The translations under genes and the position numbers were made by a program. This document shows positions 18,872 through 22,903 of a stretch of DNA of 64,000 bases, in pieces. Location of the stretch: assembly GCA_040357565.1 (NCBI GenBank), contig JBDODJ010000033.1. One strand, 5' to 3'. The first letter of the stretch is position 1; the number at the start of each line of letters is the position of its first letter. The DNA is from Cercozoa sp. M6MM. Lineage: Eukaryota; Protista; Endomyxa: Ascetosporea. The notes under the pieces were generated by a model. That model saw only the letters and a program-made list of their open reading frames with translations. It was not told where the DNA came from and did no database searches.

Positions 18872-19450
18872 TTACTGCGGCTGACCGTCGAGCTCGATGG
18901 CGCTCTCGCAGAGCAGCTCGGCCTCGAGGAAGTCGCCGCACTGCTGCAGCAGCACGCGCTGACGCAGCGCGAGCAAAAAGTCGCGCACGAGTTCGGCTTC
19001 CTCACCGCCCTCGCTACAGCAATCATCACAGTGGACGGACATTGGACCCAGCAAGGCCTTAATCTAGGTGCAAGGTACGGCAGCGACTCGAGCTCGTCAA
19101 GCGCCAAGGCGAGCACGCCGTTGACCAGGAAGAAACGCGCACGTGCGAGCTTGGCGGCAGCACTGTCACCCGACGGCACCTTGGTCCTGTGCGGCGTATA
19201 GACATACGTACGCATATAGTGCGAGGGGCATGATGACAAGAGTACAAGTCGCTGTCACGCGTGTCGGCCATGAGCGACGACACCAGTTTGGCCACTAGTC
19301 TGTTCATGAAAGTCACCTCGTCGGCCGGGACGCCTGTGCATAAACACTGATGCATCAGCCGTCCAAACACATTGGATTGAGAGCGCTACCAGCATCGGTG
19401 ATGAGAGCAATCTCCTGGATGGCGCGTTCCACACGACGGAAACGGTTCTG

Positions 19451-19502
<52 letters not shown>

Positions 19503-20912
19503 CATGCACGTGCATACACAAACACACATGCATGCACGTGCATACACAAGTAGGGACAGTCAACACGTGGGCCAGACAGTCTCACCTCCAGCATACGCTG
19601 CGTCGGCACGTCATCCAACATCTGCTTACCGTCCTCCTCCTTCAGCACTGGCAAAGCCTGCCCAAGCAACACACGCACACTCATACGCACACGCACACCC
19701 ACAGACATACATATATACAGATAAATACATGCATAACGCAAGGTGTGCAGATACCTGCACAATGGCACGCAGCACGTCGTCGTGCGTCGCCTCAGCGGCC
19801 GAGCAGAGCGCTCGCAGCAGCGACTGGCGCGCCATCGCGTCGTTGTCCTTGAGCCCCGGCGGGGGGGGGGGCGGGGGTAAAGAGCGGATAAAGGTAGACA
19901 ACTTTAATTATGAAGTACCTGCTCAAGCTGTCGCAGTGCATGCAGACAGGCGCGACCCTGCAGACATCTCGTGCATTTCCAGATACAAGAGTAGACCCGA
20001 AACACAAAAGACAAGGCACGATGCGGGCGCGACGACCGTCGTCGGAACGCCACTGCAGCAGCGCCGACTCGAAGGCGGCCAACGTGCGGCGCAGCTGCTC
20101 GATCTCGACGACGCGCTCGGCACGCTCGGACTCACTAGGGTGGGGGGGGGGGGGGTAAAGGGTCACACACTGGGCACAGTGAACCTACCTAACCTTCTCA
20201 AGTTCCTTGGACTTCTCGGCGATCTTGGCTTCGATCTCTTCGTTCATGCTGCACCAAGAATTGATATTTGATATAATATTTCTAGATTTCTATATTTATA
20301 TTCTGGGGGGGGGGATAGGTAGGGTAGGCGAAGGATGAAAACACAGCTACCGCGTGCGCAGAGCGGCCTCGTACTCGCTGAGTTTGGCGTCAAAGGCGCG
20401 CTCCAAATCGGCGTGCTCCTGTACGAGCTTGGCCTTCTCGGCGCGTTCCTGCTCGAGCTGCTCGCGCAGTTCCTCGACGCTCTCGCTCTGCTTGCTCACC
20501 AGGGCCTGGCAAGGGGCACACATCTCAGGGTGCCAAGGTGACTCGGGCAGGAGCAGGGGTTAGGGACAGGGTTAGGGACAGGGTAAGAGTGACAACAACA
20601 AAAAAGAACCTTGAACCACGGCGACAGCGTGTTGAAGACGTCGTCGGGCGACTGGCCGCCGTCGACGCGACGCACGAGATTGAGCTGGTCGAAGTGCTCA
20701 ATGATCGGCATGGTCGACTCGGTGTAGGTACGGAAGCGCTTGCGGATGCTCTCCTTGTTGTCGTCCTTGCGCACGGCCTGGCCTATGTACGTGTGCATGC
20801 GTATGTGCAGAGTATAAGTGTGACACTGACCCCCCCCCCCCCCAGTATATCTAGGTGCCCTACCGTTCTGACGCGCCTTCTCGGCACGGCCCAGCAGTCG
20901 CTGCTCCATGAC
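18872..20912 (-). CDS. MIC60: Mic60/mitofilin (coiled-coil + mitofilin domain) fused to a UMP-CMP/adenylate kinase-like domain; 5' part lost in N-gap
   Basis: Spliced product: ..MEQRLLGRAEKARQNG|QAVRKDDNKESIRKRFRTYTESTMPIIEHF..VDGGQSPDDVF..WFK|ALVSKQSESVEELREQ (coiled coil)..DDVLRAIVQ|ALP..DVPTQRMLE|NRFRRVERAIQEIAL..GDSAAAKLARARFFLVNGVLALALDELESLP|..VRDFLLALRQRVLLQQCGDFLEAE. Confidence 0.8.
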
Positions 20913-21012
20913 NNNNNNNNNNNNNNNNNNNNNNNNNNNNNNNNNNNNNNNNNNNNNNNNNNNNNNNNNNNNNNNNNNNNNNNNNNNNNNNNNNNNNNNN
21001 NNNNNNNNNNNN
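20913..21012. other. 100-N scaffold gap of unknown true size hiding the 5' ends of two divergent genes
   Basis: N run; both flanking genes run into it without a clear start. Confidence 0.9.
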
Positions 21013-21139: not shown

Positions 21140-22903
21140 GTGGCCAGACGCGTTTCGGAGAGCCGCGCGAGCGTCGTCCGGTCGGCTCATCGCAGGACCG
21201 CTTCCAGCGCTCCATGGGTGGTAGCGGTACGAGCTCACCTTGCTTTCTGTAGGTGCAGATGTGGATGTGGATGTGTGTGTGTGTGTGCAGATCGCTTCAG
21301 TCGTCCGGAGGGCATGCTGCGCCGTCCGCAGCCGGTGGGTAGCAGTCGCTTCACTCGTCCTGAGCCGGAGCAGGAAGGTCCGCGTGGCGGCGGTCGCTTC
21401 GGCGGCGGCGGCGGCGGCCGTTTCGGCGGCTACCAGCGCGGCCCTGTGCTGGGTAAGTTCGACTCCCTTCAACCCCTGACCCCTGACCCTGTGTACCCCC
21501 CCCCCCATAACCCTGTAATGTGTGCTGACAGAGGAGCGTATTGGCGTGACGAACCTTGTGTCGCTGGCGCAGGTGCAGGAGCGCGACCGCGTGGAGGCGG
21601 AGCGCGAGCAGGCGCAGCGCGAGGTCGAGCAGCAGAAGGCCGAGGAAGCCGCCGCTGTCGAGGAGGAGGTCTCGCTGTTTGGCGGTGTGAGTGTCGGCAA
21701 GTCCAAGGGCAAGGTTAAGGGCAAGAAGGGCAAGAAGGGCAAGGGCCCCAAGGCCAAGAAGCAGTCGGCGCTGCAGGCCGCGCTGTCGGCGCCAGTCGAG
21801 GTGCCTGTGACGGCGCTGCAGCTCGAGCAGGGCCTCACCACCAAGCTGCTCAGCGTAGCCTGTCTCCTACCCTCCCCCTGTCCCCGACACCCTCCCTGCC
21901 ATACCCTTGTCTTCCCATAGAACCCGCGCAACGCCGAGAAGCTGCTGCCGGTGCTGGTGGTGTCACTCCGCGAGCGCAGCATGGACTTCCTCGAGCTGTG
22001 CCACGTGGCGCAGAGCAAGCTCTCGCTCGGCTTCGAGGACCTCCTGGTCGACGTGCTGCGCGACGCTGTGGCGCAGCTCGGCGAGGAGCGCGTCATCGAG
22101 CTGGTAGCCTGGCCCTTCTATCCCATACACCTTGTGTCTATTGTACCCGAATCGATGCTTGATTGAATGCTTTTGTGCTTGATGCTTTTGATGCTTGATG
22201 CGTGCTTGCCTGCTGTGTGCGGCAACAGGTGCCGTTCGACGTGGTGCAGCAGTCGCCGCTCCAGGAGGATTTCCTCAAGGCCAACAAGCTCGGCTTCCTG
22301 CTCGGTGCCGGCTCGGTGGACATGAAGGCTCTCCGTGCCGCTGTCAAGGCCGACGCCGCCGCCGGTGTCGATGCCTTGGGTGCCGACTTCATCCCGTCCG
22401 AGGAGGTCACGGCCGTCATTGCCGAGGCTCTCGTGCAGAGGTACCTCGTCCCATCCTGCAGCTCAACCTCTACCTATCTACCTATCCTACTTTCTGCCTC
22501 CTTGCCCCGTATCCTTGTACACTCCAGATACCTGGCTGAGCCGTTGGAGACGGTGCTGCAGACGTTCGCGCCGCTGCTGGAGGCGGCGCTGCCGGCGCGC
22601 GAGGACAAGACGACACTGCAGGTGCAGCTGCTCACGGAGGCGCAGAACCAGTGGTACGCCGAGGGCGCCGAGGAGGGCGTGCTCGTCGGCCTCTTCAAGG
22701 CGCTGCACCGACTCGAGCTCGTGCACGCCCAGGCGCTGTGCGACTGGCGCGACTCGGACGCCAACAATGGCAAGAGCAAGATGAAGGCGCTGTTCGAGCC
22801 CGAGCTGTCCGACTGGCTCATCGAGATCGACCCGATGCAGTTCCGCGAGGTTAGCGATGCCGAACCCGAGTCCGACCTCGAGGACGACGATCTCGAGGCC
22901 TAG
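21140..22903 (+). CDS. RGG-rich protein with C-terminal W2 (eIF4G/eIF5/eIF2Be-type) domain and acidic tail; 5' truncated by gap
   Basis: RGGGRFGGGGGGRFGG; coiled coil; KGKKGKKG; C-terminal QVQLLTEAQNQW..LFKALHRLELVHAQALCDW..GKSKMKALF..LSDWL..acidic tail resembles W2 AA-boxes. Confidence 0.7.

Follow-up and report, generated by a model that had tools for sequence, protein, structure and literature searches.

The question raised by this locus is whether the end of a nucleoside-monophosphate (NMP) kinase and the greater part of a Mic60 protein, which follow one another in one reading frame, belong to a single gene. The frame has twelve exons and lies on the minus strand at 20912-18872 of the window (the whole 64,000-nucleotide stretch of Cercozoa sp. 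M6MM contig JBDODJ010000033.1 that was analyzed; Table 1). Two exons (E1 and E2) supply the last ~73 residues of a UMP-CMP-family kinase, and the other ten (E3-E12, 20505-18872) supply a Mic60-type coiled coil and mitofilin domain. The crista-shaping machinery has Mic60 as its ancient core, and the protein's anchor-coil-mitofilin architecture is conserved from the alphaproteobacteria to animals; to our knowledge, the Euglenozoa are the only lineage so far known to have abandoned it. Judged from the DNA sequence, the kinase-Mic60 join is probably a true fusion, that is, one gene (MHM6MM_001905) with a predicted single mRNA. Both protein families are well known, and their combination, of which the preliminary description of this DNA knew no published example, is not described in the literature searched; no paper found mentions a kinase-Mic60 protein, and the gene does not appear in the supplementary files of either genome paper.

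Cercozoa sp. M6MM is now called Lemnamoeba sinaloensis, a marine amoeba (Apofilosa, Rhizaria), and its draft genome is a short-read assembly that is broken at AC/GT microsatellites (PMC11069148, PMC13746701); gene prediction was by funannotate, with RNA-seq as training data (PMC11069148). The amoeba's cristae are tubular, and its compact genome is 84% genic, with a median intergenic distance of 162 bp and on average 13 introns per gene with a mean length of 82 bp (PMC13746701). The microsatellite-bounded contigs reported in the genome paper are exemplified by C1029 (4880 bp), the ends of which are (AC)n runs and which carries a complete AK6/Fap7-type kinase gene near 2300-2990 on its minus strand.

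Table 1. Features of the kinase-Mic60 reading frame and the adjoining scaffold gap (positions in the window)
Feature	Position	Strand	Remarks
Scaffold gap, 100 N	20913-21012		Conceals P-loop and NMP-binding domain of the kinase, with any anchor or presequence
Exon E1, cut by the gap at its 5' side	20864-20912	-	Reads VMEQRLLGRAEKARQN(G); start of the kinase LID region
Intron 1, 81 nt	20783-20863	-	GTAGGG...AG
Exon E2, C-terminal part of UMP-CMP-family NMP kinase	20610-20782	-	R-K-D-D-N, KRF, last helix
Proposed fusion intron, 104 nt	20506-20609	-	Donor AAG|GTTCTT, acceptor ..CCCTTGCCAG|G, 70% pyrimidine
Exon E3, start of coiled coil	20351-20505	-	ALVSKQSESVEELREQLEQERAEK...
Exon E4, coiled coil	20248-20189	-	
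Exon E5, coiled coil	20134-20020	-	
Exon E6, coiled coil	19957-19919	-	
Exon E7, mitofilin domain	19847-19755	-	
Exon E8, mitofilin domain	19657-19586	-	
Exon E9, mitofilin domain	19447-19390	-	
Exon E10, mitofilin domain	19333-19246	-	
Exon E11, mitofilin domain	19186-19079	-	
Exon E12, mitofilin domain	19013-18872	-	TAA stop at 18874-18872

The fused reading is already public in GenBank as an unnamed protein, MES1909103.1 ("MAG: hypothetical protein MHM6MM_001905 [Cercozoa sp. M6MM]", 382 aa; P0001 in this analysis), which was the sole real match when E3 alone was searched against 1.84 billion representative proteins. The exon model used here translates to this protein letter for letter. The queries of all database searches were single exons or MES1909103.1, and the joined exons were used only for the identity check. 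The public model begins at the first Met after the N gap and is thus 5'-truncated. All coordinates given in the preliminary description proved correct, and the in-frame, phase-0 GT-AG join without a stop codon that it reported is present in the sequence and is identical in MES1909103.1. There is no N within 18872-20912, so the kinase and Mic60 halves lie on uninterrupted sequence. On the other side of the gap a divergent gene on the plus strand (21140-22903) begins near 21140, and the missing 5' end of the kinase-Mic60 gene must therefore fall in the gap.

E1 and E2 together read VMEQRLLGRAEKARQN-GQAVRKDDNKESIRKRFRTYTESTMPIIEHFDQLNLVRRVDGGQSPDDVFNTLSPWFK, in which GQAVRKDDNKESIRKRFRTYTESTMPIIEHFDQLNLVRRVDGGQSPDDVFNTLSPWFK is the translation of E2. 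Residues 15-72 of MES1909103.1 match positions 127-184 of the 185-position profile of the UMP-CMP kinase family (TIGR01359; 51.6 bits, E 1.1e-13), and human UMP-CMP kinase (PDB 1TEV) matches the kinase part with E 3.2e-9, in agreement with the earlier assignment of exon 20782-20610 to the C-terminal part of an NMP kinase. The kinase part has the LID arginines (R..R), RKDDN, KR, and the C-terminal helix. Profile position 184 maps to 20613, so that the kinase profile ends at the splice donor. It had been expected that a profile search would return ADK and then Mitofilin; Mitofilin was indeed found, and so was ADK by way of TIGR01359, while PF00406 stayed under its cut-off (21-26 versus 26.8 bits). 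That the kinase part scores below whole-protein cut-offs (for TIGR01359, 51.6 versus 207.6 bits) is expected, since only a one-third fragment is visible; this is the last third of the kinase, and the P-loop and the substrate-setting NMP-binding domain would fall in the gap. GC3 is 0.81 in E1 and 0.93 in E2, and this full coding bias, together with the intact LID residues, argues against decay of the kinase exons into a remnant.

Most closely related to the kinase part are two environmental proteins, P0003 (46% identity; 324 aa, ENA) and P0004 (44% identity; 376 aa, JGI/Logan), each of which has two tandem UMP-CMP kinase domains with little or no linker; E1 matches their EEVMEQRLLKRGETSGR stretch. 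In both, a further domain lies directly behind the kinase C-terminal helix, as it does here, although theirs is a second kinase and not Mic60. The helix can thus accommodate a domain fused behind it. No orphan N-terminal kinase fragment was found elsewhere in the draft when the ADK-family loci of the genome were checked; the others (C259, C40, C761, C452, C801, and the AK6 gene on C1029) are complete and different genes. Three of them were considered as the missing N-terminus and rejected, C801 as a complete adenylate kinase gene, C1029 as AK6/Fap7, and C40 as a complete long-LID adenylate kinase.

The coiled coil and the mitofilin-like domain ending at 18872, both named in the preliminary description, are borne out by the Pfam Mitofilin family (PF09731), which matches residues 73-368 of MES1909103.1 with 58.1 bits (E 1.1e-15; cut-off 27.4). 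The match spans profile positions 328-612 of 614, and positions 1-327 are unmatched. Residues 174-382 of the ESM Atlas model of the protein have a structural match in MIC60 clusters (cluster-side TM 0.62), so that 18872-19850 has a mitofilin match in profile and in structure alike. In the coiled-coil region (residues 74-190) 69% of the residues are E, K, Q, R, L, or A, and a long helix is predicted with low confidence over residues 61-196 by a single-sequence AlphaFold model (pLDDT 50.5), which is too poor for a fold search. The 382 known residues contain no segment of transmembrane strength (the maximum 19-residue Kyte-Doolittle mean is 1.33); an anchor may lie ahead of the kinase, in the gap.

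Searches of Pfam and PDB with the Mic60 exons one at a time gave no matches. When proteins related to the Mic60 part or to the fusion were sought, the protein databases returned only MES1909103.1 itself and a metagenome scan returned none, but rhizarian data are sparse and these blanks say little. A six-frame Pfam Mitofilin search of the 23.6 Mb draft found no second Mic60, and it also missed the present locus because the exons are too short. Weak Mitofilin matches on C111 and C1356 were rejected as low-complexity K/Q-rich ORFs. Mic10 was not securely found in the draft by exon-wise search; the sole PF04418 match (C459:9580-9717) is weak, with E 0.18, and does not translate convincingly.

Whether the two parts make one protein turns on the 104 nt between E2 and E3. 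This spacer has GT (20609-20608) and AG (20507-20506) at its ends and joins the two exons phase 0 to phase 0, with E3 opening at 20505 with ALVSKQSESVEELREQ... (ALVSKQSES...). Its length, its pyrimidine content, and its CAG|G acceptor resemble those of the gene's other ten introns. Among the 11 donors of the gene, only that of the spacer, GTTCTT, has T at +3 (eight of the others have A and two have G), a feature that the preliminary description overlooked. The spacer is not coding-like in any frame (GC3 0.53-0.62). It contains a T6 run at 20605-20600 and a tandem duplication of CCCTGTCCCTAA (20540-20575, minus strand). No other copy of it was found in the genome; it is not a dispersed repeat, and a repeat-mediated misjoin is therefore unlikely. 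If it were not spliced, the kinase frame would continue through 37 stop-free codons (VLFCCCHSYPVPNPV...) to a TGA at 20498-20496, inside E3. GC3 in this tail is 21/37, or 0.57, as against 0.74-0.93 in 10 of the 12 exons, and lies under the overall coding GC3 of 0.83 with P 1.7e-4. With a tail so far under the coding level, the spacer is non-coding and the kinase lacks a credible terminus. These statistics favor splicing over two separate genes. Also in favor of the join are the intron-like length, pyrimidine content, and acceptor of the spacer, the lack of a membrane-anchor segment in the Mic60 part, and the failure to find a second Mic60 in the draft even though this amoeba has tubular cristae.

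A rather unlikely reading, but one that deserves serious weight, is that gene prediction merged two neighboring genes on the same strand, so that the kinase ends at the TGA just mentioned and a Mic60 fragment starts at an in-frame ATG (20523-20521, minus strand) that lies 18 nt before the acceptor and has an in-frame stop upstream of it. The earlier statement that there is no room between the two parts for a separate transmembrane segment holds; this ATG was overlooked in it. In so compact a genome (84% genic, with intergenic distances of 162 bp at the median; PMC13746701) both predictors and human readers can merge neighbors, and 104 nt suits an intron or a gene boundary equally, given the means and medians cited above. 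The weak donor, with its T at +3, points the same way, and mitofilin proteins that have no anchor do occur in Euglenozoa, namely Mic34 and Mic40 (PMC12631773). That databases poor in rhizarian data yielded no homologue of like architecture also counts against the join. On the other hand, two separate genes would leave the kinase with the 37-codon tail devoid of coding bias and with a stop codon 28 nt inside the coding sequence of the next gene, and the promoter and 5' UTR of that next gene would be squeezed into less than 90 nt inside the end of the first. Its product would be a stand-alone Mic60 fragment with neither anchor nor presequence and with an acidic N-terminus; translation from the ATG would give MCAPCQALVSK..., which has seven acidic and four basic residues among its first 30 and is unlike a presequence. 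Even if the join were false, the locus would still imply a Mic60 that lacks anchor and presequence, which is also unusual and so far known only for Mic34 and Mic40 of Euglenozoa.

It is far less probable that both forms exist, with spliced transcripts encoding the fusion and transcripts that retain the spacer encoding a free kinase that ends at the same TGA, so that the cell would have tethered and soluble enzyme side by side. The weak donor is compatible with partial retention, and the retained form would stop soon after the kinase fold, but its tail resembles junk. About as improbable is an artefact, either a contig that is chimeric within the spacer or an indel in the T6 run that masks a kinase stop (a one-base shift there would meet a stop within 12 to 28 codons), for although the draft was assembled from short reads and has many SSR-related breaks (PMC13746701) and the spacer holds both a short tandem duplication and that run, the region has no N, the spacer is single-copy in the genome, an Illumina consensus is seldom wrong in a run of six, and Mic60 would in any case still be without its N-terminal part.

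If the kinase and Mic60 are indeed fused, the mRNA would join a UMP-CMP-type kinase domain to the Mic60 coiled coil and mitofilin domain with neither a linker nor a stop in between, and the product would be the sole Mic60 of the organism. As elsewhere in the Mic60 family, the coiled coil would oligomerize and the mitofilin domain would bind to the inner membrane where crista junctions form (these family properties are summarized in PMC12631773). With one kinase domain per subunit, several kinase domains would come to lie at a crista junction, where they could convert NMP and ATP to NDP and ADP locally. Its role would be analogous to that of the soluble phosphotransfer enzymes of the intermembrane space. 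A presequence and an anchor ahead of the kinase would place the enzyme in that compartment, with the membrane on one side and the coil on the other, and the protein might then be regarded as a covalent version of soluble AK2, with which it would share the proposed role of nucleotide phosphotransfer beside the inner membrane. Mitochondrial creatine kinase and NDPK-D are further phosphotransfer enzymes of this compartment; like AK2, they are separate soluble or lipid-bound proteins and not covalent parts of MICOS.

In its fullest form this proposal would make the sole Mic60 of L. sinaloensis a chain of presequence and anchor, UMP-CMP (or adenylate) kinase, coiled coil, and mitofilin domain. The MICOS core would then include an active enzyme, each crista junction would display several copies of it on the intermembrane-space side, and nucleotide exchange or CMP/UMP recycling would be hard-wired to crista architecture. 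The proposal in this form is put forward tentatively, as possible but on balance doubtful. The preliminary description had likewise suggested that the fusion may tether a nucleotide-recycling kinase to crista junctions; its domains and their in-frame join stand, and because the N-terminal half of the kinase falls in the gap, we infer rather than observe the location, the substrate, and the tether. Should the fusion be real, it would be a second, independent departure from the Mic60 architecture, after that of the Euglenozoa and this time in a rhizarian amoeba, and the first metabolic enzyme built into MICOS; it would also open a direct way to examine the old idea that phosphotransfer between matrix and cytosol is organized by crista junctions.

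Comparison with known systems shows how the predicted protein would differ from each. Canonical Mic60 proteins (yeast Fcj1, human IMMT, and Chaetomium Mic60) likewise have a coiled coil in the center and a mitofilin domain at the C-terminus, but where they carry a presequence and a transmembrane helix before the coil, the present protein has a kinase domain. The Euglenozoa proteins Mic34 and Mic40, which replace Mic60 as the MICOS core, are also mitofilin-domain proteins without the N-terminal anchor of Mic60; they are, however, soluble paralogues in which the mitofilin domain is cryptic, they are linked to MIA import, and they have no enzyme domain (PMC12631773), whereas the mitofilin domain found here is recognizable by Pfam and lies behind a kinase. 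The UMP-CMP and short-LID adenylate kinases (TIGR01359; for example, human CMPK1, 1TEV, and the Dictyostelium enzyme, 1QF9) align with the last third of the kinase over about 58-66 residues that include the LID arginines, RxDDN, KR, and the C-terminal helix; the LID of the present protein is ~6 residues longer than theirs, and a coiled coil continues after the last helix.

The only enzyme-mitofilin precedent met is a bacterial cluster in the ESM Atlas (779 aa representative, Pseudomonadota) in which HEM4 (uroporphyrinogen-III synthase) and Mitofilin are combined in one polypeptide. The enzyme is a different one and both the name and the Pfam content of the cluster are automatic, but as a combination of an enzyme with a mitofilin domain it provides a precedent for enzyme-Mic60 fusions.
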